Virus record (IMG/VR): IMGVR_UViG_3300044213_000107
Span: 1 to 64,000 of that record
Direction: 5' to 3' (one strand)
DNA length: 64,000 nt
The notes beneath the pieces are model-generated. The model was not told where the DNA came from and ran no database searches. It worked only from the letters and a program-made list of their open reading frames with translations. Of the stretch, positions 8,317-39,088 are shown in pieces. Numbering within the stretch: position 1 is the stretch's first letter; every line of letters begins with the position of its first letter. Position numbers and translations under genes: made by a program.

Positions 8317-8345
8317 ATTATACGACAAAGAAAAATTATTGTCTA
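8317..8345 (-). promoter_or_regulatory. sigma70-type promoter, with CTAAATA late element just downstream
   Basis: TAGACA-17bp-TATAAT. Confidence 0.7.
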
Positions 8346-21265: not shown

Positions 21266-21360
21266 GTGCTCACTTTCGGGATGTTTGGGCACGACTCCTA
21301 CTAATCCCGGGCCAGCAGCCGGCCCACACCTCCGTTACGAATAACGGGTCCTAAGGGTGT
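21266..21360 (-). ncRNA. Structured GC-rich RNA candidate (multi-stem, possible pseudoknot), unassigned
   Basis: ACACC/GGUGU closing CCGUUA-UUCG-UAACGG; GGGCCGG-CUG-CUGGCCC; GGGAU...AUCCC; 3' GUGAGCA can pair with UGCU. Confidence 0.65.
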
Positions 21361-22502
21361 TTTAGTAGCTGATACGCTTCGGGAAATGTATCGGCAAAAT
21401 TCTCTTTACGTAGGGAATCATACCCATCGGTAACACGTTTAAATTCTTGTAATAACTCCGGCGAATTATCGACACCCATCTCAAGCTGTGGAATCAAATG
21501 TTTCACAGCAGTATTGGTTAATTTATTTTTAACAGCTTGTTTCATTGAATCAGGTGCTATACGCATATTTAAGTGCAATGGTCTATGCAGTATATTAAAT
21601 CCACATGTTATTCCACGTTGGTTAAAGTACTGCCATATATCACTGGCATAATATATATTTAACAAACTTACAGTAACACATACACTTAAAACAACATTTG
21701 GATTTTCTGCAGCTAACTGTTGATATTTTGATAAGTTAACTTCAATCTCTGACCATTTTGCAGGATAACGCATATACTCAAATTGTTTGCCAATGCCATC
21801 CATGCTAATACCTATATCAACACTACGAAACTTTTTAAAAATTTCATAGTAATCATCTCTCCATACGGTTCCGTTAGTGTTTATGTGTATATCTACCGTA
21901 TCGGCTAAAGGCAGTTGGCTTGCAGCAGCAAGTAGTGACCAAAGAGGTTCAATTAGCAACGGCTCGGCGCCGTACAGGTCATAATAAACTATATCTTGAG
22001 CCCATTGATTTAATGTAGCCCAGGTTGCACTATCATCGGCAAAACTTTGTTGCGCACCACGAAACTGTTCTAGATAAACGGGATACGATGTTTCATCCGC
22101 TTCCACATGATAGTAATCACGAATCCAACGACTGCTCGTATGAGGGTTACAGTGCCTACAAGCAAGGTTGCACAAATTACCGGGCTTGAGCATAATAACA
22201 CGAGGATGGTCCGTAGGTATAACATTGGCAAACTGTTCATTACTTAATAACCTTTTACTGCGCCTTCCGGCTGCTTCTTCGTCCCAGCAGTCTTGGCAGT
22301 TGTGATGTTGCTGATTTGATTTTAATGCACTGGCAATTTCTTGTCTTGTGGGACTCGCCCATGCGTCTTCTAGCGTATGTTGATCAAGTCGAATAAGTGA
22401 TTGATCGTGATGTTGAAACCAAACACGACTTTGATTACACATTGATGCATAGCCACCATTTTGTGTACTTAGTCCTAGATCGGCTAACACACAATAGGTC
22501 AT
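21351..22502 (-). CDS. Radical SAM protein (Twitch/SPASM-like)
   Basis: CNLACRHC, GAEPL, INTNG, SMDG; start revised to MTYC. Confidence 0.9.
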   Translation of the reverse strand: MTYCVLADLGLSTQNGGYASMCNQSRVWFQHHDQSLIRLDQHTLEDAWASPTRQEIASALKSNQQHHNCQDCWDEEAAGRRSKRLLSNEQFANVIPTDHPRVIMLKPGNLCNLACRHCNPHTSSRWIRDYYHVEADETSYPVYLEQFRGAQQSFADDSATWATLNQWAQDIVYYDLYGAEPLLIEPLWSLLAAASQLPLADTVDIHINTNGTVWRDDYYEIFKKFRSVDIGISMDGIGKQFEYMRYPAKWSEIEVNLSKYQQLAAENPNVVLSVCVTVSLLNIYYASDIWQYFNQRGITCGFNILHRPLHLNMRIAPDSMKQAVKNKLTNTAVKHLIPQLEMGVDNSPELLQEFKRVTDGYDSLRKENFADTFPEAYQLLKHP

Positions 22503-24361: not shown

Positions 24362-26254
24362 TTACTTTTTTGTGTACTGCTTACGCAATAGTACCTTAAT
24401 AAGATTTTGAACCCTAGGATCAGTAGGTGGCAACATAGTCTTTTCAACGTGCCAATAACCTAGAGTTTTATCTTCCCAGCTGCCAAATTTGACAATTTTG
24501 TTGACTCCTGGGCCAAACTGTGCCTGTGCCATAGCACCCAGAGATTTGACAGAATCTGGTACAAAAGTCATGGTGTAGAATTTATTGACATTTTGACCAT
24601 CAAGTTTAGCTCGAAATTCTTGATTTTGTACTCGAGATACTATGCGAGTTTTGGCCTGAGCATCGCCGGCCTGTATCGAAGAAGCCGTCAACTTGATACC
24701 ATTGTTTTCCAAACCTGCTTTGGCCACTTTGTCAACATCAGATCGACCAGTATACACACTGGCCGTGATCATGGGCGCACCCTTGGTACGCACAAAATCC
24801 AGCACTCGTTCTATGGCAGTGTTTTTTTGTATTTGATCAGTATCAGGGCCTTGCATTAACTTAGCCAACTTGGACTGATACTCTTGACGATAAGCAGCAG
24901 GATCGCTGGCTATGATCATGGCACGCACAAAACGTCCTATCACATTGTACACACCCTGAAAGTCCTGTAGATAGTTGCCACCAGCATGTCTAAAACTAAT
25001 ATACTTGCCGTTGTTGCTGATACTACTGGTATGGCTGCCAGTGGCATTGTTGGCTATGCTCTGCAACATTTTCAAATCTGTATCTTTATTGACTGCGTTC
25101 TTTACCAGGTGTCCCTGCGCACTGCGGGCATAGTCATTGTGCTCGCGACCAAAGTATTTGAGCACATATTGGTCGCCCAGAAATACTGCCAATTTTAACA
25201 AATCCAGTTTCTGCGGAATACTGACATTGATGTGTAGGCCAGTGGTTTTGTTGGTATACAGTCCCTGTTGCTGAGCCAAGGCATAGAAATTCTTGACAGC
25301 ATCTATGGCTTCGGCCACCGGCAAGGGCGGACTCACTATTTCGGCACTGGCATCTTCGTCTTTGTCAGCAGTCAAACTGCCGTCGGGCTCGATGTACCAG
25401 TTTTTTAAATTTTTGTCTTCTTGATGATAGCTGTCAAACACAGTGACCTTGCGTCCCATGACAGACTGTATTATGGGTTTGAGTGCATCGGCCGCTTTTC
25501 TATAGAGTCGGTCATCGTCATCATCGTAGTCATCATCGGCGTAATCTTTGAGATTTAATTCTGCCCATACTGCCGAAGGAGAGTATTGAAAAAATCGGCT
25601 GGTGTGACGGTCTATACCCATGCTAGCACCAGTCAACCATGACAAAAATCCATTCCAGCTTGATGAGTCATCAACGGTACGAACTATCTCTGATCCTACA
25701 GCAAATATTTTTGATTTGTTGTAGTCTGCATACACATATCGACCAAACAGTCTTGCGAATCGCATCTGATCCTGTAGGCTGGTACTGTCAAAGGAAAAAT
25801 CAGGTTTGCTGTCGCGCATCAGCTTTAGAGCTTTTTTGGCACATTTTTCTTTTACATCATCAGGCAGCTTGTTGTAGAGTTCTATGATTTTTGGCAGGTG
25901 GCCCGAATACCAGACTTGATAAGCCTCATTAGCAGTACGGAATCCGCGATAGGGTCTTTTGAATTTGAACAAGGAGTCAAACCATTTGGTAGAAAGTACC
26001 ACACCGTTTTCAAAAGTTGAGCCAACGTTGTTGTCCCAAACATTGGCATAGTACATGGCATCATCTGCTTGCTTGGCAGTGATCGTGGCATCATCTGATG
26101 TTTTTTGAAATACAGCCGGGGGCACATGCACTTCAAATTCAAATCCGATTAATACACCAGCACCCTGCCCTTGCTCAATGGCGTTAGCAAAAGCACTAGG
26201 ATTCATTGGTGCTTCAACAACGCTGCGTGATTCAATGATGTCTTTTATATACAT
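24362..26254 (-). CDS. Putative amidoligase (COOH-NH2 ligase) with capsid-targeting-like N-terminus
   Basis: GFEFE, IEPDGSL, EIVSPP, TGLHINVS, ISFR..GG; N-terminus MYIKDIIES. Confidence 0.8.
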   Translation of the reverse strand: MYIKDIIESRSVVEAPMNPSAFANAIEQGQGAGVLIGFEFEVHVPPAVFQKTSDDATITAKQADDAMYYANVWDNNVGSTFENGVVLSTKWFDSLFKFKRPYRGFRTANEAYQVWYSGHLPKIIELYNKLPDDVKEKCAKKALKLMRDSKPDFSFDSTSLQDQMRFARLFGRYVYADYNKSKIFAVGSEIVRTVDDSSSWNGFLSWLTGASMGIDRHTSRFFQYSPSAVWAELNLKDYADDDYDDDDDRLYRKAADALKPIIQSVMGRKVTVFDSYHQEDKNLKNWYIEPDGSLTADKDEDASAEIVSPPLPVAEAIDAVKNFYALAQQQGLYTNKTTGLHINVSIPQKLDLLKLAVFLGDQYVLKYFGREHNDYARSAQGHLVKNAVNKDTDLKMLQSIANNATGSHTSSISNNGKYISFRHAGGNYLQDFQGVYNVIGRFVRAMIIASDPAAYRQEYQSKLAKLMQGPDTDQIQKNTAIERVLDFVRTKGAPMITASVYTGRSDVDKVAKAGLENNGIKLTASSIQAGDAQAKTRIVSRVQNQEFRAKLDGQNVNKFYTMTFVPDSVKSLGAMAQAQFGPGVNKIVKFGSWEDKTLGYWHVEKTMLPPTDPRVQNLIKVLLRKQYTKK

Positions 26255-26259
26255 ATCAA

Positions 26260-26267
26260 TATTTATC
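26260..26267 (-). promoter_or_regulatory. T4-like late promoter (GATAAATA)
   Basis: 5 bp upstream of the amidoligase ATG. Confidence 0.6.
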
Positions 26268-27795
26268 GTAAACTTAAAGCTTGATCTTGTTGGCTAGCAT
26301 ATGCTTTATGTAGTTTATCAATATAACCCAGGTTTCGTAATATTTTAAATGATAAGTTTTCTACGCCAAACTCGCCATGTTTGTCTAATCCCGATCTGCG
26401 CATTTGTTTTAACTTATATACAATTCGTATAATATCTTCGGGGTCGTTGGCTTGATTTACTGCAACATCTATTTGTTTCATTAGATCACGTGTTTTTGCA
26501 TTTATAGCACGATCATCAATTTGTGGGCGATCAAATTTGGGTTCCTTAATCCACTTTCCGTGTAATAAACTGTAAACACCGGCACTAACAGGAGGATTGT
26601 TAACATCCTCGACATACATTTCTACTTCATGTCCGTATATGGTAATATCATGTTCGGTATTCCAAATACGCTTTTTCGCAGAATAAAATTTTTCTGCTAG
26701 GTCATCACATTTTAAGTCTGCGTATTTGGTTACTACATGTACATCAAAATCACTGTATTTGGTATAGTTGTAGTTAGCCATACTTCCTGTTAATACTACA
26801 TCAATGACACGAAAATCTGGTATGTCTAAACTGTGTGTAAAAAATAGTGCAGTTTTTAATAACTGTAATTGCACCCGTGGATCAATGTCATTATCATGCC
26901 AGACCCGCGGATTTAATGCATCGTGGTAAGCAACATTGTTCTGTACATAACTTTCAGCAACAATAGGTTTATTTTTATAATATTCTGGAAAGCGTCGCCC
27001 AAACTCTCTCATGATAATGCCGGCAACTGCATTAGCTTCATTTTCTTGATCACTGCCAGTTTCGCCGTCACTGTAGTTTAAATTGCCTGTTTGATCCTGG
27101 CGAAAGTGTGTCAACTCATGGCCCATGGTTCTTACAATGTCTAACGGATGACGATTCGCAATACCAAGAACCATTTCACTTTGATCTGCATCATAATAAC
27201 CGAATGTTGGTTGTCCACCTTGTGGCGGTATTTCTCGAACTAGCTTTATTCGAGGTACATGTGTAATACCAATTATCTCTGCGGCCATTGGCAAAAAGTC
27301 CTGCATCATAGCGATAAAATCGTCGTCGCTGGTTTCAAGAAACTCATTGGCAATAGACTGACAAATTTTTCTAATTTTAGGATTAGACGTTTCAACTTCG
27401 GCAAACTGTCGTTGCTCTCCGTGCTGTGTTGGATCCTTATATCCGCAGTAGACTTTTTTAACTGTGCTTTGATTTATTAAATCTGTACAACTTGATTGAT
27501 ATCTATCATCCATGTCTTGATTGCATGGACTTAGTGTTGTGACAATGATACTACCTTCGGGTATATCACCATACTTGTTTTGATAGTTGTCAATTGCTAC
27601 TCTTTCGGCATGCACACGTTGACCATCTGGTCCTGGAGAATTCACACCAACTGCAATACGATGGTCGGGATCTAATACACAGGCTGCAACTAATCCAAAG
27701 TCTTGTTGGCTTTTTTGTCCATTGATGACTGCCTGGCAAAGTTCAATCAATACCGAGTCTAAATGCTGATAGTTACTGACTTCATTGTCTTTCAT
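26263..27795 (-). CDS. Three-domain fusion: Zn-deaminase + HExxH metallopeptidase-like + pol-beta-type nucleotidyltransferase
   Basis: HAE..TLSPC..C; HELTH..E.EANA; LTGS..DFDVH..E.YVE; start revised to MKDNE (ATGA-type coupling). Confidence 0.8.
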   Translation of the reverse strand: MKDNEVSNYQHLDSVLIELCQAVINGQKSQQDFGLVAACVLDPDHRIAVGVNSPGPDGQRVHAERVAIDNYQNKYGDIPEGSIIVTTLSPCNQDMDDRYQSSCTDLINQSTVKKVYCGYKDPTQHGEQRQFAEVETSNPKIRKICQSIANEFLETSDDDFIAMMQDFLPMAAEIIGITHVPRIKLVREIPPQGGQPTFGYYDADQSEMVLGIANRHPLDIVRTMGHELTHFRQDQTGNLNYSDGETGSDQENEANAVAGIIMREFGRRFPEYYKNKPIVAESYVQNNVAYHDALNPRVWHDNDIDPRVQLQLLKTALFFTHSLDIPDFRVIDVVLTGSMANYNYTKYSDFDVHVVTKYADLKCDDLAEKFYSAKKRIWNTEHDITIYGHEVEMYVEDVNNPPVSAGVYSLLHGKWIKEPKFDRPQIDDRAINAKTRDLMKQIDVAVNQANDPEDIIRIVYKLKQMRRSGLDKHGEFGVENLSFKILRNLGYIDKLHKAYASQQDQALSLR

Positions 27796-28226
27796 CTTAG
27801 GCTTGACTTTAACATCCACCCGTGTTTTTCATGTGCATCCATGCGTTCAGCAAGGAAGTTACTAAATCCATGTTTGCCTTCGGCTTCGGCTAAATCATAG
27901 ACTATTTTAAACATACCAATGGCTTTTTGATTGTCTTCAATAAGTTGATGTACCATGGCCATCTGTGGCGGTATTTCTGTTTCATCTTCGATTTGTGTTA
28001 GTACACTAAATCTAGTGTAGCTGGCCGGCACAAATGCTCCTAGACTGCGAATCTTTTCTGCAAAGTCGTCAATCGCATCATAAACTTCTTCGTAGATTTT
28101 ACCAAAAAGACCGTGATACTCATAGAAGTCAGCACCAGTTACATTCCAGTGATAGTTGTGTGCTTTTAGATAAAAGCTGAATTCTGTGGCAAATGCTATT
28201 TTTGCTGCTTTTTGTAGTTCATCCAT
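27792..28226 (-). CDS. dps: Dps/ferritin-like DNA-protection protein
   Basis: HNYHWNVTG..F...H, D..AEKIR.LG, HEKHGWML. Confidence 0.92.
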   Translation of the reverse strand: MDELQKAAKIAFATEFSFYLKAHNYHWNVTGADFYEYHGLFGKIYEEVYDAIDDFAEKIRSLGAFVPASYTRFSVLTQIEDETEIPPQMAMVHQLIEDNQKAIGMFKIVYDLAEAEGKHGFSNFLAERMDAHEKHGWMLKSSLR

Positions 28227-28228
28227 TG

Positions 28229-31207
28229 TTATACCTCATATCCTGCTTGACGCATTTCTAACAACATACTATCAAGTAAGGAATCATAATCTTCTTTAAT
28301 GTGTCCACCTACAGGACTGGTGCTGTCTACTGCCACCGGCATGTTGCTGTCTTCTGTTTGTCGAGCAGGTCTGCAATCAAGTATAGTAGCATTATGTCGT
28401 TCTGCCCAATCACGTGCGGCAGATTCACTGCTAAACACTCGTGTTGCTAATACACGTTGATCTCTACGATTATACACATAATAACGACATTCTACTGCGG
28501 TGTTTTCGGCCAAATGCCATGCCGCTTGGTCCGCATCATGATCTGGTCTTACTGCTTTATTTTTTTGTACTTCGGCAGCACCTAGTCCTAGTTTGGCTCG
28601 ACGCTTTTTTTCTGCCATTTGTGTTTCGTAGTCTTTTATGCCGTGATAAACTTCACCGTGTGGTGGTTGCAAAGGACGATCCTTTGACACTAGATTTTTA
28701 ACATCAGAGTAGTTTATTTTTGGTTTCTTTTTAGGACTTTGAAATCCGAAGATACTTTCTTGTTCAATGTCTTCGTGCCATTGATTGTTGCTGCCGGCCC
28801 AAGCATCTCCTTGATCGCTATGCCATTGGTTGTCAGCGCCTGTCCATGCATCTTCGTCTACACTTTGCTCACGAATAAAATCGTCATCGCCGTAGTGTAA
28901 TTCCCAAGGCTCAATAAAATCATCGTCATCACGTTGTCTTGGTGCTATACCAGTGCCATGACATACTCTGCAACTGGTATTATCAGTAAGTCCTTCGCCA
29001 GTGCCACGACATGTATAACACTCGTTATCAGCATCTTCTGGGCCTTCGGACACTTTTGCTACTGGTGGTTTTTGCTTGGCTATCTCTAATTCATTTGTTG
29101 TAACAACTTTAAATTGTGCGCCGCCACCGCGTGCCAATAGTGTTTTAATTTTATCTGCGGAACCATAGTTATCACCGGCAACTACAACAGTTCCATCGGG
29201 TTGGATTTGTTTTATAACTCTAGTAACAAAAGCATGATCTGTATTAGGATACTGTTTTTGCACTGCCGCTAGTCCACGTTGCAATGCTTGTGAGGCTTGT
29301 TGCATTTGTGGAGTTTGCTGACTATCTTCCGCCACACCTTGCTTACCTCCATGGACGGCATTTAATAATAATTGGTATAGTGCTTTTTTAGCAAGATCAA
29401 ATGATGGGAATACTTGTTTGTTTTTTGTACTTCTGTTTACGTAAATTTTGTATACATTACCTTGTTTTACTAAACGATATTCGTTTCCATTTATTGTTTT
29501 AAGGAATAATAACTTAATATGTGCGGATGGATCATCTGATATTGTAAACTCACCTTCCGCCAATTGTTTACCGGTCAAAGTTATAGTTTTATCCGGATTC
29601 ATTCTAATAATTCTGTCGTTTAATAAACTTGTATAAACATGACGTTGTGCAGGTGTAATACCATTTCTATCTATCTTAAAAGGCAGATTATGATTTTCTG
29701 CTGTTTCAATGGCCTTTATTAATAATATTTTACCATGTCCCAACCCTCTGACGTCGGAATGTATCATGGCATCATTCTCTACATCATTTGTTTCAGGGAA
29801 ATATTGATAGGCAAAAAATCCTGCTTCTCTACCGTCTACGGCCAGTTCAACTTCAAATGATGTTTCGTAGTTATCTCTTGAGAATATGTTAAAAGATGGT
29901 TGTGATTGTTCTGAGCCTTCCGCCACACCTTCTTTGTATGTAACAGGATCAGTTTGTTTTAAAAATTCGTCAGGATCAAAATCTTTTACACTATAGGATT
30001 CGATATAGTCTTTATAATTTGATAATTTTTTAATTATCTCGGGGGAATTGTTAATCCACATAGCACGAGGAACATCTAATACAGTATATTGTCCTTCTGA
30101 CATTAATTTTATATTGTTATAATGTTCAGGAATCCCTGGCATAAATGTAGTAAAATATTTTAATAAACTCATTAGTGATGTATAATTTTTATACAAAGGA
30201 TCTGTTTTGGAAGTAGTAGACATTGACACCGCGGTTGCAATAGCAGGCATTATTGGACCATTTGGGGCAATAACCTCATCGATTAATTGCTGACGCAAAT
30301 TCTCTTTAATTTTTGCATCTTCAGAATTAGTAGTATTTTGATTACTAGTATTATTTTTTGACGGGTTCACTGTAGATTTTTGTGATGCCGGTTCCGTAGG
30401 ATTGATATTATTTTGCCATGAACTTCTAGTATTTTTTTGTTGAAAATTATCTTTTGATTGAACATATTTTTTAATGTAATCGTATACGGCCTCTGCTCCA
30501 GAAAATGCTGCAGTCGCTATTCCTATACTTGCTAAATCGATACCTACTTTCTTTAAAAAATTTCTACGATTGTTATTAGGTGACTGGTTGGGTTGTGCTT
30601 TAGGCGGCTCTTGCGAAGCACGCTCTGCATTCACTGCGTCCAATATTTCTTTTTCGGTAATGTTGTACTTACGCATCAATGCCGATAATTGTCTTTTCAA
30701 TAAATCTGTTTCGTGCTGAGGTTTATTATGACTATTTTGTATTTCTTTATATAATTGAATACAACTATTTAACGCCCCATCTCTTGTACCAGCCTCCGCT
30801 ACACCTTGTAAACTCTTGCGAATAGCAGCAGAAGTTTTATCAATCTGCTTACCAGTGGCCCGCATTACATTGCCCATACGGTCTGTGGCTTGGCGGTGCT
30901 TGCCAGCAGCAGCAAGTTCGTCTGCAGACTTTCGAGCCTTTTGTTTATAACTAGACAATGTGTCTGAACTTAGTTCGTCAACTATTTCATCTTGGCTTTC
31001 ATCTGCAGGTCTTGTATAAACTTGTTGTACATTTTTTGGATCTTTATCAAGGATTACATTCGGCAATGGTGCATTTTTATCTTTTGCAAAATGCTGGCGC
31101 ATGTCTGCAACGCTAGGTGTTGGTTTAGGTGCAGGTTTTTTAGCAGGCTGAAAATGAAAAATTCCTTCTACAGATTTTTCTTTTTCAAATAAATCGCTGA
31201 TAAACAT
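28229..31207 (-). CDS. 992-aa modular polyprotein, putative internal head protein (includes a GNAT module, DnaJ-type Zn finger, Tat-like segment)
   Basis: MFISDLFE N-terminus; modules joined by QGVAEA/EGVAEG/QLAEG/QGVAED/KVSEG; RGLGHGK acetyl-CoA motif; CYTCRGTG/CRVCHGTG. Confidence 0.7.
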   Translation of the reverse strand: MFISDLFEKEKSVEGIFHFQPAKKPAPKPTPSVADMRQHFAKDKNAPLPNVILDKDPKNVQQVYTRPADESQDEIVDELSSDTLSSYKQKARKSADELAAAGKHRQATDRMGNVMRATGKQIDKTSAAIRKSLQGVAEAGTRDGALNSCIQLYKEIQNSHNKPQHETDLLKRQLSALMRKYNITEKEILDAVNAERASQEPPKAQPNQSPNNNRRNFLKKVGIDLASIGIATAAFSGAEAVYDYIKKYVQSKDNFQQKNTRSSWQNNINPTEPASQKSTVNPSKNNTSNQNTTNSEDAKIKENLRQQLIDEVIAPNGPIMPAIATAVSMSTTSKTDPLYKNYTSLMSLLKYFTTFMPGIPEHYNNIKLMSEGQYTVLDVPRAMWINNSPEIIKKLSNYKDYIESYSVKDFDPDEFLKQTDPVTYKEGVAEGSEQSQPSFNIFSRDNYETSFEVELAVDGREAGFFAYQYFPETNDVENDAMIHSDVRGLGHGKILLIKAIETAENHNLPFKIDRNGITPAQRHVYTSLLNDRIIRMNPDKTITLTGKQLAEGEFTISDDPSAHIKLLFLKTINGNEYRLVKQGNVYKIYVNRSTKNKQVFPSFDLAKKALYQLLLNAVHGGKQGVAEDSQQTPQMQQASQALQRGLAAVQKQYPNTDHAFVTRVIKQIQPDGTVVVAGDNYGSADKIKTLLARGGGAQFKVVTTNELEIAKQKPPVAKVSEGPEDADNECYTCRGTGEGLTDNTSCRVCHGTGIAPRQRDDDDFIEPWELHYGDDDFIREQSVDEDAWTGADNQWHSDQGDAWAGSNNQWHEDIEQESIFGFQSPKKKPKINYSDVKNLVSKDRPLQPPHGEVYHGIKDYETQMAEKKRRAKLGLGAAEVQKNKAVRPDHDADQAAWHLAENTAVECRYYVYNRRDQRVLATRVFSSESAARDWAERHNATILDCRPARQTEDSNMPVAVDSTSPVGGHIKEDYDSLLDSMLLEMRQAGYEV
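29326..29340 (-). repeat. GVAE repeat copy 1 (AAGGTGTGGCGGAAG)
   Basis: Exact 15-bp match to copies 2, 4 and 5. Confidence 0.9.
29913..29932 (-). repeat. GVAE repeat copy 2 (GAAGGTGTGGCGGAAGGCTC)
   Basis: 20 bp identical to 32790-32809. Confidence 0.9.
30792..30808 (-). repeat. GVAE repeat copy 3, degenerate (CAAGGTGTAGCGGAGGC)
   Basis: Near match encoding QGVAEA. Confidence 0.75.
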
Positions 31208-32631
31208 TATTTCATTGCTCCTGCAGATTTAACCAAGTTTGCTAATTGTTGTCCTTGGGGACCTTGTAAAATTTTACCTAGTGCTGGCGCCATTTTACTT
31301 ATAGCAGCTTGATCAGCGGTGCTCATAGGTGCACCTGTTTCGGCTTTTTGTAATGCTGGTCCAGTTTTAGCTGGATCTACATCAACACCGGCAGTTTTTA
31401 GAACGCCAAGATTCTTTTGTTGTAATGCTTGTTGTTGTTGTAGTTTTGCAGCATCTTGAGGTTTGTTTGCACCACCAGCGGTTGTTTGTGCCATGGTTGT
31501 TTGTGCAGTGGGTGTGAGATCTTCTGCCATATCCTCATCCATGCTGCCTTTTAATAACCCTGCTTTTTCCATAGCTGCCGACGATTCGGGCCCTAACTTT
31601 TGTACACCACTAGCAACACCTTTAGCATTGATGGCAATATATGGAGCAGGTGTCCTTACCATTCCGTTGTTAGACACAATGTATGTGTTGTTTTGTGTAT
31701 CCAATACCGCTTTAACTGTTTGTCCAGCAAAAGGTACAGTAGTTAAAGTAAATCCATTGCCTAGATCTTGTTGTGCATGTGCACCTAGCGCACCCAATGC
31801 CATGGCCCCGCCAACAACTGCATCTTTCCAGCCTTCCGCCACACCTTCATTAGGCACACAGTTGTTTACACGCACACCACCTTTGATCTTTGTACCTTCT
31901 TTGTGCTTACCAGTCCAGCACTTGGGATCTAGGCGTGTTTTAATTTCGTTTACAGCTGCACCTGTGGGTACAGCACTTTCGCAATTCCACTTGCGTAGTG
32001 CTTTATTGATACGGCTATTTGGATCTCTCTTGGTCTTGGCTCCAGTACGATGTTTCTTCATACCTTTCATACGAGCACAAAAACTCTTACGACGCTTTGA
32101 GGCCTTTGAGCCTTTCTTTAACTTGCTGGGTTTGGTTGTGACTGCAGTTTGTAGTTTGCTACCAGGATGACTACGACGATAACTTGCTACACCTTTTTTA
32201 TTCAAGCCGCCATTTTTATTCTTACCTGATGACTTTTGCCAGGCTTCTGCTTCGGCTAATAATTCTTCATCATCACAGTCATCGAAATCTTCCCAGATTA
32301 GATCTGCGTCAACACCATTTTGTTCAGCAATTGACTCAATCATTTCTTCAATAATGTCAAACTGCGAATTTAACAATTGTTCTTCTACTAGTAGATCCGC
32401 CTGAAACTGTTGCCAAGCTTCACTGATTTCCCGATGAACATTTCGTTCTTTGCTGGTACGATCAAGTTCTGGTAGTACACTTTCGGCGGCACCAACAAGG
32501 CGACCTTTGAACGGATGTTGCTTACCACCAGTCTTGGCTTTTTCAGTTCCACGCACTTGATCGCCGGGTTTTTGTCCTACCGCTTGTCCGGCGAACTTAT
32601 CCATTGATTCTAATAGTTTACGCATGTCCAT
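31207..32631 (-). CDS. Modular polyprotein, putative internal head protein (basic AW..GKN..GGLN module, CW.G...NCV module, signal-peptide-like module)
   Basis: MDMRKLLES start; junctions LLAE, VNE, EGVAEG, MDEDMAED. Confidence 0.7.
   Translation of the reverse strand: MDMRKLLESMDKFAGQAVGQKPGDQVRGTEKAKTGGKQHPFKGRLVGAAESVLPELDRTSKERNVHREISEAWQQFQADLLVEEQLLNSQFDIIEEMIESIAEQNGVDADLIWEDFDDCDDEELLAEAEAWQKSSGKNKNGGLNKKGVASYRRSHPGSKLQTAVTTKPSKLKKGSKASKRRKSFCARMKGMKKHRTGAKTKRDPNSRINKALRKWNCESAVPTGAAVNEIKTRLDPKCWTGKHKEGTKIKGGVRVNNCVPNEGVAEGWKDAVVGGAMALGALGAHAQQDLGNGFTLTTVPFAGQTVKAVLDTQNNTYIVSNNGMVRTPAPYIAINAKGVASGVQKLGPESSAAMEKAGLLKGSMDEDMAEDLTPTAQTTMAQTTAGGANKPQDAAKLQQQQALQQKNLGVLKTAGVDVDPAKTGPALQKAETGAPMSTADQAAISKMAPALGKILQGPQGQQLANLVKSAGAMK
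31831..31848 (-). repeat. GVAE repeat copy 4 (GAAGGTGTGGCGGAAGGC)
   Basis: 18-bp exact match to copies 2 and 5. Confidence 0.9.
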
Positions 32632-32632
32632 A

Positions 32633-33130
32633 TTAATATACACCTTTTCCTACTTGCACCACCTGAGGTCTACGAATAACATTGCTGATCTTTTTTGGTT
32701 TTCCAGTTGGTGGTTTTCCACCTAATTCACCGACCACCGCACCAATGCTGGCTGCACCAGTTGCACCACCAGTTGCATCTTCTTTTAAGGAGCCTTCCGC
32801 CACACCTTCCTCTAACACAGCCGTTAATTGTTGTTGAGCTGACTCCATAGCAAACTCGGGCATGCCTTCGGCTTCTTGGCTTAATTGATCATACTCTAAA
32901 TATTCACGCACAGTTTTTAAATAGTCTGCAGCAATGCTGATCTTTTCACTGACCCATCCATCGAGCCCGTCTAGTTCTGATACTCGTTTTAATAGTTTGT
33001 GCAATTCAATTGCATCTTTTGCAGCGTGATAACATTCTTCACGAGCCATTTGTACTTCGTGGTCTTTGTGCATAGCATGTGCATCATCGCCGATAAATTC
33101 ATTTTCTACGATAAAATCTGTGGTTTTCAT
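32633..33130 (-). CDS. Putative internal head protein
   Basis: MKTTDFIVE closely resembles the T4 capsid-targeting sequence MKTYQEFIAE; contains EEGVAEG. Confidence 0.7.
   Translation of the reverse strand: MKTTDFIVENEFIGDDAHAMHKDHEVQMAREECYHAAKDAIELHKLLKRVSELDGLDGWVSEKISIAADYLKTVREYLEYDQLSQEAEGMPEFAMESAQQQLTAVLEEGVAEGSLKEDATGGATGAASIGAVVGELGGKPPTGKPKKISNVIRRPQVVQVGKGVY
32790..32809 (-). repeat. GVAE repeat copy 5 (GAAGGTGTGGCGGAAGGCTC)
   Basis: 20 bp identical to 29913-29932. Confidence 0.9.
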
Positions 33131-33159: not shown

Positions 33160-33426
33160 TTAGCCGATATTGAACACAGTATCTGAACTTTGACCGTTAA
33201 CCTGTACATTTCTTACACTAAATGTGCCGTTAGCATCGAGTGCTTCTAGTCTTACTGCATGTGTTCCGGGGTCAAGATTACAAATAACTGTTTCTTGCAG
33301 ATATATTTCTGCTGGCGGAAATCTAAAAGTTCTTTCGGTGATTAAATCACGATCAACATAAATCCTGTATGCCGGAGCAGCATCTGCGTAATCACAATAG
33401 ATATCTGCAGAGATCTTAACTTCCAT
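33160..33426 (-). CDS. Hypothetical beta-rich protein
   Basis: ORF track; weak similarity to 34524-34994 (P.Y/F.I.V, L..G...L). Confidence 0.65.
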   Translation of the reverse strand: MEVKISADIYCDYADAAPAYRIYVDRDLITERTFRFPPAEIYLQETVICNLDPGTHAVRLEALDANGTFSVRNVQVNGQSSDTVFNIG

Positions 33427-34492
33427 GTTGTGCTCGCAGTTGTTTTAGTTGATGTTGCAACTTACCTAATGTTTCTACTAAACGAAATGCACGAGCATTT
33501 TTCATTGGTGTATCTGGGTGCACATCCCGGGTTAGGCTCATGCTATAACGTGGGTCTCGCGCCATTTTAGCATTGCTGGCGACAACACCAACTCCGGCTG
33601 CTTCATTAACTGACAAATCTTTTATTAACTTTGATAATTGTTTTATCTGTTGCGCAACACGTTCTAGTTTTTCTTCGGTGCTGTGTTCTTCTTGTTCAAC
33701 ATGATCAACATCACGTTCTTCTTTGTCCAACACATACATCGCTAGTGCTTGATCGTCGGTTTTTGCTATTGGATACATAACACGTGCACGTCTGACTAAA
33801 AGATCAACTTTGGTGTTAGAATGCTCGTGGCTTTCGGCAACTGCTTTAGGTATTTTATCTAGAATTAACCCAATTTCTGGATCTGCACGACCATACAATT
33901 GTTTAATGTATTCTAATCTTGCAGTAGGATCATCCCGTACCATGTTCCAGAGATTCCTGCAGTCTGTACCATGGCTAGCATCGTATGTTTTGCCACCGAT
34001 TACTAAACTGGCCTTTACTTCAGGAACAATAATAACATAGCCATGTTGGTCAGCAGTAGTGGCTTCTTTGATGTTTTTCCAGGTTTTGAAGTAAGTTTCG
34101 TCACCGGCACGTATGCTTTTTGCAGGATTGTCTCGTTTATAAACAGCATCGGGTTGGAGTCTATCTGCATCTGGCGCCCCAACTGCAGTGATAAAAATAG
34201 TATTGGTTTTATCTATGCTGTCTGGTAATGCGTACACATTACTGGTTTCTACAACACGATCCTGCGGAACGCCGGCGGCAGTCATTAGTTGTATTTTATC
34301 GCTAAAATTAAAAGGACTTTTAGCGCCATCAGTTTTGTTGCTGGTTAAAATATACACCGCATCACGGCCAAATTTAGCCTGCAGTTGTTGAAAAACCGCA
34401 GCATGTCCACGGTGAAAAGGTTGAAAGCGGCCAGGATAAGTTACTACTATTCTGGGACCGCTTTCTTTTATAAACATTTCAGCAATAAACAT
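33416..34492 (-). CDS. Cytidylyltransferase-like (HxGH) protein with capsid-targeting-like N-terminus
   Basis: YPGRFQPFHRGH, SPFNFSDK; MFIAEMFIKE N-terminus; VAE/VNE junctions in C-terminal part. Confidence 0.8.
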   Translation of the reverse strand: MFIAEMFIKESGPRIVVTYPGRFQPFHRGHAAVFQQLQAKFGRDAVYILTSNKTDGAKSPFNFSDKIQLMTAAGVPQDRVVETSNVYALPDSIDKTNTIFITAVGAPDADRLQPDAVYKRDNPAKSIRAGDETYFKTWKNIKEATTADQHGYVIIVPEVKASLVIGGKTYDASHGTDCRNLWNMVRDDPTARLEYIKQLYGRADPEIGLILDKIPKAVAESHEHSNTKVDLLVRRARVMYPIAKTDDQALAMYVLDKEERDVDHVEQEEHSTEEKLERVAQQIKQLSKLIKDLSVNEAAGVGVVASNAKMARDPRYSMSLTRDVHPDTPMKNARAFRLVETLGKLQHQLKQLRAQHGS

Positions 34493-36114: not shown

Positions 36115-36831
36115 TTATTCAGGCCTATGCACCAGTTCATGAATTTTTCTCACAAACCCGGGACTAATAATAGACAAAAAAGTAGCTATCTTTTCATCGT
36201 TGGCATAAAAAAATGCGCCATAAAGATAATTAAAAATTTGAAATTGGCGTATGGTGCCTGCACTTAGTTTAACATCATCTTGTGAATTTAAATAGTTAAA
36301 AATCGATGATCTTACATCATCGGGATAATATCCATCTCTGATCATGAATTTAAATTTATACTCAGGTTTTTGTTTTCTAATAATTTTGTCGCTACTGAGT
36401 ATTTCTAAATCTTCGTTGTCTTTGGGCCATGTTACACTTTGGATTTTTGACTGTAGAGATTCGTTCATGGCAACAGCAACCTCTCGCAATACCTCTTGGT
36501 CTTCGGTATAAATCTGCACATAAGGATCTTCAATACGAATTTTTATTTTTGATCCAAACGAATCTTTAATGTCTCGAAGATTTTGTAGATCTGCAGAGGA
36601 AAATAAGTCAACATTTCTACGTGGACGCCAACTACCACCAAAATTATAATGCCGAATATTAAAAATCATAGCATCTAACTCGGCGGATATATTGCCAGTC
36701 CTAGCATCTGTTACTACACGACTGCCGTGCACTACTAGTTCCATGCGACAATAAAAACGATTGTAGTATCGTTTTTTTGTAAATAGGTAGTTAATGTTTT
36801 TATTGATCTTGCGCCAAAACGATGAAGCCAT
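36115..36831 (-). CDS. Hypothetical protein (start uncertain)
   Basis: ORF track. Confidence 0.6.
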   Translation of the reverse strand: MASSFWRKINKNINYLFTKKRYYNRFYCRMELVVHGSRVVTDARTGNISAELDAMIFNIRHYNFGGSWRPRRNVDLFSSADLQNLRDIKDSFGSKIKIRIEDPYVQIYTEDQEVLREVAVAMNESLQSKIQSVTWPKDNEDLEILSSDKIIRKQKPEYKFKFMIRDGYYPDDVRSSIFNYLNSQDDVKLSAGTIRQFQIFNYLYGAFFYANDEKIATFLSIISPGFVRKIHELVHRPE

Positions 36832-39088
36832 CGGTGTCTACTCCTGGTGCTGATTCAGATGCCGAAAAGCCAACAACATCAAATTCAATTTTATTATCTC
36901 TATAGTCAACACTGATTATACTGCCATTTACAACATTATCAAAAAGAATCTTTTTACTTAGTGGCACTTTAATTAAGTCTGTGATCTTGCGTTGTACAGG
37001 TCTTGCACCCATCTTAGGATCAAAACTTTCTTTTACTATATACTCGACTGCGGATTCAGTAAGTCTAATTTTTATATCTTTTTCAGACAACAGTTCGTTA
37101 AGTTCTACAATAAACTTAGCAACAATTTTCCTCATGCTTAGATCTGTTAGTCGGTTAAACTTAACAATACCATCTAGCCTATTGCGAAACTCTGGTTTAA
37201 AGAAGTTTTTAACAGCCTTGTCATCCTCGCCTGACTTTTGTAAATCTCTACCAAAGCCAATTGAGTTTTTGTCATTGTCTGCGGCACCTAGATTGCTGGT
37301 TAAAATAACAACAGTATTTCTACAATCAGCTTTCTTACCATTACTGCTAGTTACTACACCTTCGTCCATAAGACTTAACAATAAATTGCTAACATCTGGA
37401 TGTGCTTTTTCAATTTCATCAAACAAAATAATGCTATTGGGATTCTGTTCAATGTCTCTGATCAACATACCACCACCTAAATTACCATCATCGTAGCCTA
37501 CATATCCCGGGGGAGCACCGATTAGTTTAGCAACGGTGTGTTTTTCTTGATATTCGCTCATATCATATCTCAGCAGTTTCATCCCAAGATTTTCTGCTAG
37601 TAGTTTAGCAAGTTCTGTTTTGCCTGTTCCGGTCGGGCCCAGGAATAAAAACGACCCAATTGGTTTATTAATAGATTTAAGTCCGGCCTTGCTGATATAA
37701 ATTTTTTCTAATACATTATCAACTGCTTCGTTTTGGCCAAACAAACGATCTTTAATGTTGTGTTCAAGACTAGAAATATTTTTAACACCGTCTGCACTGC
37801 CCATGATTTGATCAACGGGAATTTTTGTTGATTTACTTATTGCTTCAATAACATGTCCACGCAATACTGTAAAATCTGTTTGACGTATTTTTAATCTTGC
37901 AGCACAGGTATCGATTAAATCAATTGCTTTGTCTGGTAGTTTTTTATCTGCTTGATATCTTACACTTAGATCAACTGCGGCATCAATTGCTTCATCGGAG
38001 ATTTTACCAATGTGAAATTCTTCAAATTTATCACGAAGTCCACGCAAAATATCTTTGGCAACTTTTGGTGTTGGCTCGTCAATAGTAACACGTTGGAAAC
38101 GACGCATCAACGCACGATCTTTATCGAAACTTTGATTGTATTCTTCCCAGGTAGTACTTGCAATAACCTTGATCCTACCTTTTGTTAGTGCTGGTTTGAT
38201 CATATTTGCAAAATCTACACTACTGCCACTACTACCACTGCCAGCACCTTGCATTTGATGTGCTTCGTCAATAAACAAAATACATTTGCCTTTGGCATTA
38301 AGTGATGCCAACACTACTTGTAGTTTTTCTTCAAACTCGCCGCGATATTTACTGCCTGCTAATAAACTGCCAATATCAAGATTATAAACAGTATAGTCTT
38401 TTAGATATTCGGGTACATTTTTGTTAATAATGTTTAACGCCAGGCCTTCGGCAATAGCAGTTTTGCCTACACCAGGATCTCCGACCATTAGAATGTTACT
38501 CTTATTGCGCTTTGCTAAAATTTCTGTAATTTCTTGCAGTTCAGTTTCTCGGCCAATAACAGGATCAATACCACCTTCTTGGGCAACAATATTTAGATTG
38601 TCACAATAGTGTTCTAGAATTTCATCAACTTTACCTGCTGTCACTTTGTTTTTCCCACCAAGATGATCGTATGTTTTATTAAAATGCTCAACTAGTCCTG
38701 CACGATCTAACCCGTACTTGACCATAAAATAATGTGTATAACTATTTTTTTCTGCATGCATGCTCAAAAATAAATCCATGATGGTGATATCACTGCGGGC
38801 ACTAAACAATACTTGAGTTACTGCACGATTAAACACACGTTCTAGTGTATGTGTTTTCTTTGGTTCAACTTCTTCTCGAACCAAATAAGTTTGATTTAAC
38901 AAATATGTATGTACATCAAGAATTAATCCTTCGATGTCGGCACCATAGTTCCGAAGAAACTTGTTAAATGTTTCATATTTTAACATACTTAAAAATAAAT
39001 GCTCGAGCGTTACATACTCGTGTTTGTAGCCTTTGGCGATAGCACTAGATTCAGCAATGATGTGTTCAATTTCGGGAGTTGTGTTCAT
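36800..39088 (-). CDS. clpA: ATP-dependent Clp protease ATP-binding subunit ClpA
   Basis: HEYVTLEHL N-domain, GDPGVGKT, FIDEAH, LPDKAIDL, GPTGTGKT, FDEIEKAHP; no ClpB middle domain. Confidence 0.93.
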   Translation of the reverse strand: MNTTPEIEHIIAESSAIAKGYKHEYVTLEHLFLSMLKYETFNKFLRNYGADIEGLILDVHTYLLNQTYLVREEVEPKKTHTLERVFNRAVTQVLFSARSDITIMDLFLSMHAEKNSYTHYFMVKYGLDRAGLVEHFNKTYDHLGGKNKVTAGKVDEILEHYCDNLNIVAQEGGIDPVIGRETELQEITEILAKRNKSNILMVGDPGVGKTAIAEGLALNIINKNVPEYLKDYTVYNLDIGSLLAGSKYRGEFEEKLQVVLASLNAKGKCILFIDEAHQMQGAGSGSSGSSVDFANMIKPALTKGRIKVIASTTWEEYNQSFDKDRALMRRFQRVTIDEPTPKVAKDILRGLRDKFEEFHIGKISDEAIDAAVDLSVRYQADKKLPDKAIDLIDTCAARLKIRQTDFTVLRGHVIEAISKSTKIPVDQIMGSADGVKNISSLEHNIKDRLFGQNEAVDNVLEKIYISKAGLKSINKPIGSFLFLGPTGTGKTELAKLLAENLGMKLLRYDMSEYQEKHTVAKLIGAPPGYVGYDDGNLGGGMLIRDIEQNPNSIILFDEIEKAHPDVSNLLLSLMDEGVVTSSNGKKADCRNTVVILTSNLGAADNDKNSIGFGRDLQKSGEDDKAVKNFFKPEFRNRLDGIVKFNRLTDLSMRKIVAKFIVELNELLSEKDIKIRLTESAVEYIVKESFDPKMGARPVQRKITDLIKVPLSKKILFDNVVNGSIISVDYRDNKIEFDVVGFSASESAPGVDTDGFIVLAQDQ

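Follow-up and report, generated by a model that had tools for sequence, protein, structure and literature searches.

The question raised by this locus is why a DNA repeat of up to 20 bases should recur, almost unchanged and always in the same reading frame, within three abutting genes of a phage. The window, i.e., the whole 64-kb stretch of DNA that was analysed, is the first part of a 260.7-kb contig of a T4-type phage, which encodes a T4-type DNA polymerase and also a UvsW-like helicase. In a preliminary description, the repeat had been regarded both as a recombination site and as the code for a protease cut site, joining the cassettes of an integron-like array. No earlier description of this linker was found in the literature.

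Genes of the Locus

The three linker genes and their neighbours, all of them encoded on the minus strand, are the following:

33416–34492, minus: neighbour gene; same type of leader (MFIAEMFIKE), cytidylyltransferase-like domain
32633–33130, minus: gene 1, 165 aa; leader MKTTDFIVE at 33104–33130, Gly/Ala-rich tail after the linker
31207–32643, minus: gene 2, 478 aa (474 aa with start at 32631 in the IMG call), its start overlapping the gene 1 stop
28229–31207, minus: gene 3, 992 aa; four modules behind the leader MFISDLFEKE, its start overlapping the gene 2 stop
30794–31207, minus: module 1 of gene 3, upstream of a degenerate linker
29918–30793, minus: module 2 of gene 3, AT-rich, with a twin-arginine-like stretch
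29327–29917, minus: module 3 of gene 3, AT-rich, with a weak GNAT match
28232–29326, minus: module 4 of gene 3, CxxC zinc-ribbon-like by a weak match
27792–28226, minus: Dps/ferritin-like gene flanking the variable locus; conserved, with homologues in 45 related loci
26263–27819, minus: three-domain protein with a deaminase, an HExxH stretch and a nucleotidyltransferase
24362–26254, minus: neighbour gene; same type of leader (MYIKDIIES), amidoligase domain

The 112-aa module of gene 1 recurs in the polyproteins of other phages at first, middle and last positions. Gene 2 comprises a very basic DUF6321 domain (aa 140–219) and, beyond the linker, a 208-aa module unrelated to it. The gene at 33416–34492 is likely a single-module member of the same locus. 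Most modules of linker ORFs are without family assignment; a GNAT match was obtained in L070, and a ParB-like motif was recognised by eye in two cassettes. A domain search of the three linker genes found no zincin-like metallopeptidase domain.

Linker Copies

The 15-mer AAGGTGTGGCGGAAG occurs four times exactly in the window, in each case on the minus, i.e., coding strand (29326–29340, 29917–29931, 31833–31847, and 32794–32808), while dinucleotide-preserving shuffles give a chance expectation of 0.00 matches. Allowing up to three mismatches, the sole additional copy in the region is GGTGTAGCGGAG at 30793–30807, which deviates at two positions. The preliminary description had listed these four sites together with a degenerate copy (given as 30792) and a half-site (29553); it had written the motif in coding sense, but had left unstated that the genes lie on the minus strand. 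In the order of transcription, the copies are:

32790–32809, minus: linker copy 1, LEEGVAEGS, in the 165-aa gene; canonical core GGTGTGGCGGAA at 32795–32806
31831–31848, minus: linker copy 2, NEGVAEGW, in the 478-aa gene; core at 31834–31845
30791–30808, minus: degenerate linker, LQGVAEAG, at the joint of modules 1 and 2 of the 992-aa gene
29913–29932, minus: linker copy 3, KEGVAEGS, at the joint of modules 2 and 3 of the 992-aa gene
29552–29563, minus: half-site TTG GCG GAA GGT (L-A-E-G) within module 3 of the 992-aa gene
29326–29340, minus: linker copy 4, KQGVAEDS, at the joint of modules 3 and 4 of the 992-aa gene

Every copy in the window is in frame and reads x(E/Q)GVAE(G/D/A) across the three abutting genes. 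The linker peptide is (K/E)(Q/E)GVAE(G), and its coding DNA of 17–20 bases is near-invariant (a-A-g-CAA GGT GTG GCG GAA GGc). Copies 1 and 3 are identical over 20 bases, 19 of which are shared by copy 2; the latter is preceded by a small Cys-containing unit and followed by a hydrophobic Gly/Ala-rich stretch. The half-site has GGCGGAAGG in common with the linker and matches the pattern hydrophobic-x-Glu. The only other in-ORF GVAE of the window is contained in a DnaJ-like gene at 39915, where the codons differ (GGC GTA GCA GAA). Counted over 166.7 kb of the contig, the 12-base core occurs six times versus about 0.02 expected, and all six occurrences are in frame as GVAE; the two outside the locus of the window are held by a second multi-module gene at contig positions 90928–92562.

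The base composition changes at two of the linkers. The GC content falls from 0.40 to 0.33 at the degenerate linker and rises from 0.335 to 0.43 at linker copy 4. Both AT-rich modules of the window (29930–30793 and 29339–29917; GC 0.33) are bounded by linker copies, while the neighbouring modules have a GC content of 0.40–0.465 and the window one of 0.384. The AT-richness of the segments between the copies, observed in the preliminary description, is thereby borne out.

Conservation of the Linker at the DNA Level

For the comparison with other phages, 78 related loci were collected by homology to DUF6321, independently of the linker motif. In these loci, exactly GGTGTGGCGGAA (GGT GTG GCG GAA) encodes 113 of 143 GVAE peptides and, when unique ORFs are counted, 88 of 113, whereas 0.48% would be expected from the codon usage of these ORFs. 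Within the rest of the window, GTG makes up 14% of the Val codons and GCG 6.7% of the Ala codons; the GTG-GCG pair is indeed kept against the codon preference seen there. A sequence logo of 253 unique contexts confines the conservation to about −6 to +14, with unrelated flanks, and in 89 homologous cassette pairs identical codons are found at 86.6% of the conserved residues in the motif versus 59.2% elsewhere. The N-terminal leader served as an internal control: its peptide is conserved, but its third codon positions vary freely. The linker is conserved at the DNA level, beyond what selection on the peptide explains, as the preliminary description had held.

Of the 182 viral instances of the 15-mer, 177 fall within long ORFs in the frame that encodes GVAE; in cellular genomes, the 15-mer is present only as single scattered matches, never in arrays. 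The phages carrying linker genes are uncultured T4-type freshwater phages, and the linker architecture was seen in independent samples and contigs.

Exchange of Modules at the Linker

The linker marks the boundaries between modules. Linker ORFs hold two to eight modules with up to seven motif copies per ORF, and in an AlphaFold model of four cassettes the confidence falls at all three linkers. This agrees with the position at domain boundaries given in the preliminary description.

Cassette shuffling at the linker is supported, since module orders differ and since blocks of nucleotide similarity start and end on the motif. Different orders were found in L133, L167, L178, L152, and L154; the modules of L133, for example, run c2-c22-c23-c6-c3-c7-c24-c0, those of L167 c2-c7-c22-c6-c3-c25-c0. 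The ends of internal blastn blocks lie within 10 bases of a motif in 18.7% of cases versus 3.2% at random, i.e., about six-fold more often. L133 and L167 have in common a 98% identical block with a motif at each end; L144 and L109 differ by a replaced cassette between two motifs, the flanks being 100% and 97% identical; and L144 and L145 are 99.6% identical from a motif through the end of the gene. The comparison of breakpoints in relatives that had been proposed in the preliminary description has, thus, been run, and gain, loss and re-ordering fall on the motif. In L056, L026, and L090, the capsid proteins are 91–100% identical, yet the cassettes differ after a common first module. Altogether, 168 of 182 informative joints have other neighbours elsewhere; there is no difference between joints with silent-variant motifs (31/33) and those with canonical ones (137/149), so that this test, which was saturated, lends no direct support to a need for identical DNA in exchange. 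Twenty bases are short for efficient homologous recombination, and selection for functional chimeras alone would leave breakpoints at domain linkers.

Leaders, Head Genes, and Predicted Cleavage

In phage T4, the prohead protease gp21 cleaves after L/I-x-E, and a ten-residue leader directs proteins into the head (PMC9026906). The V-A-E of the linker follows the general pattern hydrophobic-x-Glu, but has Val at P3 where T4 has Leu/Ile; degenerate linkers retain hydrophobic-small-Glu-Gly/Ala (AVAEG, LMAEG, GVTEA, LAEG). T4 ipII and ipIII (NC_000866) have a common ten-residue leader ending in I-A-E, which is resembled by the leader of gene 1 and less well by those of the 992-aa and 478-aa genes. 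In the related loci, T4-like leaders are present on 126 unique ORFs and are carried by 39.5% of GVAE genes versus 15.3% of others (p = 3e-5), with a loose pattern that is also present in 15% of other gene families.

In L056, L026, and L090, motif genes adjoin T4-like portal, protease, scaffold, and major capsid genes, and the major capsid protein begins with invariant L-x-E-G sites; a gp21 homologue stands beside motif genes in L056, at 4794–5420, and in L026 (phmmer versus T4 gp21, E 1e-17 to 6e-19). In L127 and L109, the motif genes are located among sheath, tube, head-closure, and terminase genes. Neither a gp21-type protease nor a major capsid gene was found in positions 1–166,694 of the 260.7-kb contig; proteolysis could also proceed through the Clp system that the phage encodes or through the M78-like HExxH domain.

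For three internal cassettes, homologues exist as genes of their own, where a leader takes the place of the upstream linker. Twin-arginine signals function at the N-terminus only. One such signal begins eight residues past the linker at residue 988 of a 1488-aa protein, and the same signal is found directly after the leader in a stand-alone gene. Taken from these sequence features, it is plausible that the linker is the cut site of a T4-type prohead protease, and the predicted packaging and injection of the cassette products is plausible, too.

Proposed Explanation and Alternatives

On balance, the three genes probably belong to a hypervariable locus for capsid-targeted strings of modules, in which the linker is crossover point and prohead-protease cut site at once. 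The phage would be an uncultured T4-type jumbo phage and the modules independently folding cassettes joined by the linker. During mixed infection, the short identical linker would serve as a crossover for homology-guided exchange by the recombination and replication machinery of the phage, so that modules could be swapped, inserted or lost without a break of the frame; modules flanked by intact linkers would spread preferentially and, as a consequence, the linker DNA would stay uniform. The N-terminal leader would carry the precursor into the prohead core, where a T4-type prohead protease would recognise V-A-E before G and cut after Glu, thereby removing the leader, cutting every linker and freeing the modules inside the capsid. 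The freed modules would then be delivered along with the DNA.

We regard as possible, though doubtful, a more far-reaching version, according to which the 20-base linker is both a recombination signal and a head-protease site with which T4-type phages build, re-order and trade strings of capsid-delivered effectors, some of them with export signals, and in which exchange is perhaps stimulated, e.g., by neighbouring GIY-YIG endonucleases. If so, the export signals of some cassettes would carry these further within the host, and exchange might be an active process and not a passive by-product of homology.

A different enzyme might cut the same linker. The M78-like HExxH domain of the protein at 26263–27819 or a host protease could act in the cytoplasm, before or after delivery, with the linker still being a recombination joint as well. 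The HExxH stretch matches Peptidase_M78 weakly (E 0.002) and also a putative metallopeptidase family, the protein has homologues in 60 related loci, and metallopeptidase domains have been predicted to process polyvalent proteins (PMC5512222); the missing gp21 homologue in the first 166,694 positions of the contig points in the same direction. However, the peptidase matches fall below the Pfam thresholds, the pattern of leader and linker, with hydrophobic-x-Glu and then a small residue, is that of T4-type proteases (PMC9026906, PMC10052503), and several motif genes are found in head clusters adjoining a gp21 homologue, which makes this option rather unlikely. We give a similarly small chance to a linker that is not cut at all, but serves as a flexible spacer between the domains of “polyvalent” proteins that act intact, its DNA being conserved only as a recombination joint. 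Multi-domain proteins of about 1000–1500 aa are common in phages, and module shuffling and DNA conservation can be explained without cleavage; moreover, some polyvalent proteins are transferred at full length (PMC5512222). An invariant G-V-A-E peptide is, however, unnecessary in a spacer, even degenerate copies preserve the hydrophobic-small-Glu-Gly/Ala pattern, internal twin-arginine signals right after the linker need a new N-terminus to make sense, and the same cassettes also exist as separate genes with leaders.

Still less probable is a separate DNA or mRNA signal, i.e., the site of action of a site-specific nuclease or recombinase (e.g., a GIY-YIG endonuclease), a translational pause or a regulatory site, with the peptide being secondary. 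Silent positions are fixed on otherwise rare codons, and GIY-YIG endonuclease genes directly adjoin a motif gene in five loci, but such genes occur in only 19 of about 198 loci, and the motif is essentially confined to one reading frame within ORFs. It lacks conserved flanking sequence or a hairpin, an integrase-like family is absent among the Pfam-annotated genes, and a pause signal has no need of one exact 12-mer. Chance, recent tandem duplication or an assembly artefact, as conceivable for a short motif in potentially chimeric metagenome assemblies, is effectively refuted by the shuffles, in which no matches are expected, by the exact core in 113 of 143 cases, by the 253 unique contexts with unrelated flanks, and by the same architecture in independent samples and contigs. 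In addition, assembler k-mers are typically longer than a 20-base repeat.

Comparison with Known Systems

The integron-like array of the preliminary description is not supported in the mechanistic sense. Ordered, exchangeable cassettes bounded by a repeated site are a feature of integron arrays, too; unlike integron cassettes, which are separate genes, mostly without a promoter, those described here are in-frame parts of one protein, and exchange is probably by homology. No integrase or recombinase family was found in the Pfam/PHROG matches of the genes at 24–35 kb or in the called genes at contig positions 50–167 kb. An attC-like hairpin is absent, conservation extending over about 20 bases without a partner arm, and in three of the four 60-base contexts folding was no stronger than in shuffled sequences (z +0.37 to +0.59). 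With no integrase among these genes, no hairpin-forming site and cassettes that are pieces of one ORF, an integron mechanism was rejected. Ordinary homology-guided exchange at a short identical linker is the simpler reading, and T4-type phages offer direct precedents for it.

The nearest parallels are the T4 internal proteins, with their variable genes, and the T-even adhesins, which recombine at conserved motifs. As in T4 IPI, IPII, IPIII, and Alt, a short leader ending in hydrophobic-x-Glu is present in a T4-type phage (PMC9026906, PMC3012670), gene content is highly variable between related phages, and basic DNA-associated proteins occur together with enzymes, delivery with the DNA being only predicted here. 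The T4 internal proteins are encoded by single-module genes with own leaders, in contrast to the many modules per ORF and the DNA-conserved internal linker of the present locus. Short conserved coding motifs that separate hypervariable segments are also known from T-even phages, in the glycine-rich motifs of gp38 and in gp37, and exchanges in or near them yield chimeric proteins, as stated in PMC3157838 with reference to Tetart et al. (1996, 1998). These motifs, however, form the structural core of one domain in fixed order, while here independent domains change in order and number and the linker also resembles a protease site; there is no sequence relationship to gp38 and the likeness is in mechanism only.

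PeSL cassettes (promoter plus stem-loop) of hyperplastic regions in T4-type phages contain short conserved repeats serving as sites of homologous recombination (PMC2839356, PMC4122927). Their repeats likewise flank variable units and allow insertion, deletion and replacement, but are intergenic and consist of an early promoter and a hairpin, whereas the linker is coding, in frame, and devoid of both. In the polymorphic toxins CdiA and Rhs, the joint before a variable C-terminal domain carries a short conserved peptide motif; the DNA coding for it supplies homology for the swapping of stored cassettes, and the Rhs joint is also a cleavage site. These toxins have one variable tip per protein, belong to bacterial secretion systems and are unrelated in sequence, as opposed to strings of up to eight modules and a phage capsid.

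Cleavage at comparable sites is known from the ejection and inner-body proteins of the phiKZ-like giant phages SPN3US and 201phi2-1. A gp21-related protease of these phages cuts many of the head proteins behind the Glu of A-x-E or S/A-x-E, some of them at several sites and, in SPN3US, with a preference for Val at P4 (PMC10052503, PMC9026906). Those sites are not repeated, DNA-conserved linkers, and the fragments are mostly propeptides and not cassettes. Polyvalent proteins (Iyer et al. 2017) combine two to fifteen conflict-type domains per polypeptide, for which co-delivery with DNA and proteolytic release are predicted, recombinational variability is suggested, and built-in metallopeptidase domains are proposed as the processor (PMC5512222); the main text of that paper is without the word “linker”, so that no linker repeat is reported there. 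The present ORFs are similar in bringing together several unrelated conflict-type domains; the domain types met with here, i.e., GNAT, deaminase, nucleotidyltransferase, and, by eye, a ParB-like motif, are broadly of the polyvalent sort.

The Linker and Its Host Genes

A conserved linker (17–20 bases, read in frame as (K/E)(Q/E)GVAE(G)) is shared by three abutting genes, the stops of which overlap the starts of the next:

32633–33130, minus strand: 165-aa gene with an in-frame repeat copy
31207–32643, minus strand: 478-aa gene with an in-frame repeat copy and a DUF6321 domain
28229–31207, minus strand: 992-aa multi-module gene with in-frame repeat copies

The 15-mer AAGGTGTGGCGGAAG is found exactly four times on the minus strand of the window (29326, 29917, 31833, and 32794), as compared to 0.00 matches in shuffled window sequence. 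A fifth copy, at 30793, has two mismatches, a half-site reading TTG GCG GAA GGT is present at 29552–29563, and 20 bases are common to the copies at 29913–29932 and 32790–32809. All copies are in frame, and the encoded peptide is x(E/Q)GVAE(G/D/A). The codons used are rare, since GTG accounts for 14% of the Val codons and GCG for 6.7% of the Ala codons in the rest of the window. Two repeat-bounded modules (29930–30793 and 29339–29917) have a GC content of 0.33, in contrast to 0.40–0.465 in neighbouring modules. A preliminary description of this DNA had reported the copies, their common frame and the half-site, the use of GTG-GCG against the genomic codon preference, and AT-richer segments between the copies; these observations hold, and the description was accurate overall, although it left the minus-strand location of the genes unsaid.

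Just upstream of the linker in the 478-aa gene, a Cys-containing unit of ~35 residues (31846–31950; KCW..G....GTK.KGG..V.NCVP) was noted, which, across many loci, is found again right before the linker of many proteins that are otherwise unrelated. This linker copy is also flanked by a local inverted repeat (31810–31869; AACAACTG ... CAGTTGTT; fold z = −2.5), which is absent from the other linker copies.

Conservation of the Linker as DNA

The 15-mer matches more than 120 viral contigs, with 35 of these loci containing two to five copies inside a few hundred bases. An unbiased sample is provided by 78 loci that were retrieved through the DUF6321 protein domain. Their long ORFs contain 143 GVAE peptides, 113 of which are encoded exactly by the 12-base core GGTGTGGCGGAA (88 of 113 in unique ORFs), whereas a frequency of 0.48% is predicted from codon usage outside the motif in these ORFs; the earlier proposal of conservation at the DNA level is, thus, substantiated. 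Across 253 unique contexts, the logo shows conservation from about −6 to +14 (a-A-g-CAA GGT GTG GCG GAA GGc) and random sequence further out. In 89 homologous cassette pairs (55–92% nucleotide identity), i.e., pairs of the protein segments between linkers, the codons of conserved residues are identical in 87% of cases within the motif vs. 59% overall. The N-terminal leaders of motif genes, serving as a control, are conserved as peptides, with free third codon positions.

Confinement to a single frame is strict. Of 182 viral 15-mer instances, 177 are located in long ORFs in the GVAE frame, and all six copies of the 12-base core at contig positions 1–166,694 are read as GVAE. In cellular genomes, a 17-mer of the linker gives single scattered matches in GC-rich organisms and no arrays. 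Selection on the peptide cannot explain the fixed rare codons, nor can a protein-independent signal in the nucleic acid account for the one-frame confinement; a Chi-like or uptake signal was ruled out, as the motif is restricted to one reading frame of few genes. In its silent-site conservation, the linker offers a clear example of coding sequence selected above the protein level.

Modular Architecture and Shuffling

Cutting 188 unique motif-bearing ORFs after every GVAE yielded 554 segments with a median length of 135 residues, many of them of 45–80 residues, from ORFs with up to seven linkers. Upon clustering (cluster names c0, c2, etc.), the same modules were found to recur in differing orders among related viral loci.

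Module order in the polyproteins of four related viral loci
L133: c2, c22, c23, c6, c3, c7, c24, c0
L167: c2, c7, c22, c6, c3, c25, c0
L178: ..., c3, c7, c0
L152: c2, c55, c56, c0

Breakpoints of nucleotide similarity fall on the repeat: 18.7% of the internal blastn block ends are within 10 bases of a motif, compared with 3.2% of random positions. Individual pairs of loci are explicit in this regard. Between L133 and L167, a 98.3% identical block begins 5 bases ahead of one motif and ends 1 base past the motif two cassettes downstream, and the blocks covering c22 (92.8%) and c7 (92.3%) are each bounded by motifs on both sides while occupying different array positions. L144 and L109 share flanks of 97% and 100% identity, with the intervening cassette replaced exactly between two motifs, and L144 and L145 are 99.6% identical from the motif through the gene end, with unrelated sequence upstream. 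At 168 of 182 informative joints, a different neighbour is present in some other ORF; likewise, the window modules occur elsewhere with other partners. The comparison of breakpoints that had been suggested as a check of cassette shuffling, therefore, favours cassette exchange, with good support for both the repeat and the shuffling.

When four consecutive L133 cassettes were modelled with AlphaFold, compact, confident units resulted, and confidence fell at residues 56–64, 131–145, and 194–213, which are the three linkers; the model of window segment 29168–30070, with a mean pLDDT of 34.6, was uninformative. Pfam and PHROG searches of the cassettes mostly returned no family.

The Linker as a Candidate Head-Protease Site

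The T4 head protease gp21 cleaves after Glu in L/I-x-E, and T4 internal protein III carries, in its first ten residues, a signal that sends proteins to the prohead and is removed afterwards; the related giant-phage proteases recognize A-x-E or S/A-x-E, that of SPN3US favouring Val at P4 (PMC9026906, PMC10052503). Judged by its sequence, the linker, with V-A-E followed by G, fits this class of sites. Degenerate copies retain the pattern hydrophobic-small-Glu-Gly/Ala (LAEG in the window; AVAEG, LMAEG, and GVTEA in loci L056 and L090). In addition, the leader of the 165-aa gene, MKTTDFIVE, resembles the leader common to ipII and ipIII in the T4 record. Starts of the form M-[RK]-x-x-[DEQN]-[FILM]-[FILVT]-x-E are present in 126 unique ORFs of the loci and are commoner in GVAE genes (39.5% vs. 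15.3%). For three internal cassettes, homologues exist as stand-alone genes; there, a leader replaces the upstream linker.

By position, some of these genes belong to head or tail clusters. In L056, L026, and L090, a T4-like block made up of the portal, protease, scaffold, and major capsid genes is followed by a GVAE gene, and the N-terminus of this capsid family contains invariant ...LLE-(S/G) and AL(L/M)E-G sites; in L127 and L109, motif genes are found among sheath, tube, head-closure, and terminase genes. The post-capsid position is not general: 80 loci possess a related capsid gene, and the region behind it varies, but a GVAE gene is present there in one sub-lineage only. The stretch downstream of the T4-like major capsid gene (80–100% identity) in L204–L281 (80 loci) differs in gene content between almost all contigs, with homing endonucleases and long repeat-like proteins among its products.

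A twin-arginine signal peptide is functional solely at a free N-terminus. In L144 (7046–7489) and L098 (10039–10473), such a signal begins 8 residues past a linker—in L144 at residue 988 of 1488—and in L034 (3861–4493), it is located directly behind a capsid-targeting-like leader on a GH19-like lysozyme. Module 2 of the 992-aa window protein contains an RRNFLKK... stretch at about 30560–30470. The adjacency of these signals to linkers or leaders suggests delivered proteins that may subsequently be exported by the host.

Cleavage at the linker and delivery of the products, as predicted from these features, are plausible. Alternative routes of proteolysis are an M78-like HExxH domain encoded by the neighbouring gene (26263–27819), for which the match is sub-threshold, or the Clp system that the phage itself encodes. 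No gp21-type protease was detected at contig positions 1–166,694, which speaks against the head protease; along the contig to 166.7 kb, neither a capsid gene nor a protease gene was found. The site class of the linker, the T4-like leaders and the head-gene context in related loci point to the head protease.

Proposed Homology-Guided Exchange at the Linker

The simplest account of the uniformity of the linker DNA is that the linker itself provides the homology used in exchange. Modules with intact linkers on both sides would move between co-infecting phages, and the linker would stay uniform because the modules flanked by intact copies are those that move. Canonical and silently mutated linkers do not differ in their frequency as variable joints (137 of 149 vs. 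31 of 33), with the test being saturated. A length of 20 bases is short for efficient homologous recombination. T4-type phages offer two precedents: exchange at conserved in-frame motifs of the adhesins gp38 and gp37 (PMC3157838), and exchange at the PeSL repeats on either side of variable ORFs (PMC2839356, PMC4122927).

A dedicated recombination enzyme is not indicated. GIY-YIG endonuclease genes are present in 19 loci in all, which led to their rejection as obligatory partner; in five loci, they lie within 100 bases of a GVAE gene (L056:7870–8592, L026:3241–3984, L090:1959–2678, L091:3261–3647, and L197:6649–7383). An amidoligase, found in seven loci only, was rejected as partner as well. 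No integrase families were seen among the annotated genes at 24–35 kb or the called genes at contig positions 50–167 kb, and an attC-like hairpin at the linker was rejected, none being found by folding or in the logo flanks.

Relation to Known Systems

Lacking a visible integrase family and a hairpin site, the locus fails every defining test of an integron, and the integron-like reading initially put forward is not sustained. It resembles the T4 internal-protein system in its leader, its predicted packaging and head-protease processing, and its variable content, and the T-even adhesins in motif-guided recombination; its architecture is shared with the polyvalent proteins that Iyer et al. described (PMC5512222). 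In the searchable literature, no prior description of the peptide or of such a polyprotein or internal-protein linker was found. A dedicated, DNA-conserved linker joining up to eight exchangeable modules in one capsid-targeted precursor was found neither in that literature nor in deposited phage genomes.

Proteins that phages deliver together with the DNA disarm host defences. To the question of how this arsenal is quickly renewed, the locus suggests one answer: linker DNA would guide in-frame exchange, and the encoded peptide would allow separation of the products by the head protease. If true, a coding, in-frame recombination signal would join the known means of phage mosaicism; hundreds of small modules, many of 45–80 residues and findable by simple motif search, would become candidate delivered effectors or anti-defence proteins; and a natural design for loading several cargo proteins into T4-type capsids would be at hand.

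Host Phage and Genomic Setting

The window covers the initial 64 kb of the 260,723-base IMG/VR contig 3300044213_000107. The DNA polymerase of the contig is T4-type, with the jumbo phages Phosso (52% identity) and Atu_ph07 (49%) as closest deposited relatives, and a UvsW-like helicase, a clamp loader, a DnaB-type helicase, and a ribonucleotide reductase are encoded further along. A near-identity DNA search of 50,697 deposited phage genomes gave no match, nor did the 992-aa gene and the L133 polyprotein as protein queries; these multi-module genes are present in none of these genomes. For the 478-aa and 165-aa genes, deposited matches, from T4-like cyanophages and pelagiphages, are weak or arise only via DUF6321, a small, basic domain in the 478-aa gene that is known elsewhere in these phage groups.

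Conserved neighbours bracket the variable genes, with homologues of the deaminase-nucleotidyltransferase gene in 60 loci, of a Dps-like gene in 45, and of a ClpA-like gene in 28, counts that take in loci found solely through the 15-mer. Such an arrangement is typical of a hyperplastic region set in a conserved T4-type backbone. The contig carries a second multi-module gene:

contig 90928–92562 (L283:7473–9107): leader MRIKEIILES and two canonical linkers

It adjoins a leader-bearing 296-aa gene (L283:9107–9997); a second amidoligase (738 aa) and a GNAT gene are nearby.

Several further features of the contig were noted. The gene at 26263–27819, with homologues in 60 loci, combines a cytidine/dCMP deaminase domain, an HExxH stretch with a weak Peptidase_M78 match, and a nucleotidyltransferase. 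A near-complete phage Clp system is formed by a ClpA-like ATPase and a DnaJ-like protein in the window (36800–39088 and 39099–39950) together with ClpP, ClpX, and ClpS, accompanied by HSP20 and a ribosomal protein S21 gene, beyond it (contig stretches L284:7505–8095 and L286:2711–5058). Four adjacent ORFs of 81–83 residues without family match, possibly tandem paralogues, are situated in a 10-kb stretch of small ORFans (L203:725–1708; contig about 78.4–79.4 kb). Unusually for a phage, the window encodes at least six radical-SAM genes (8336–9505, 16663–17931, 21351–22502, 43929–45164, 50641–51879, and 52814–53869), with additional ones on the contig beyond it.
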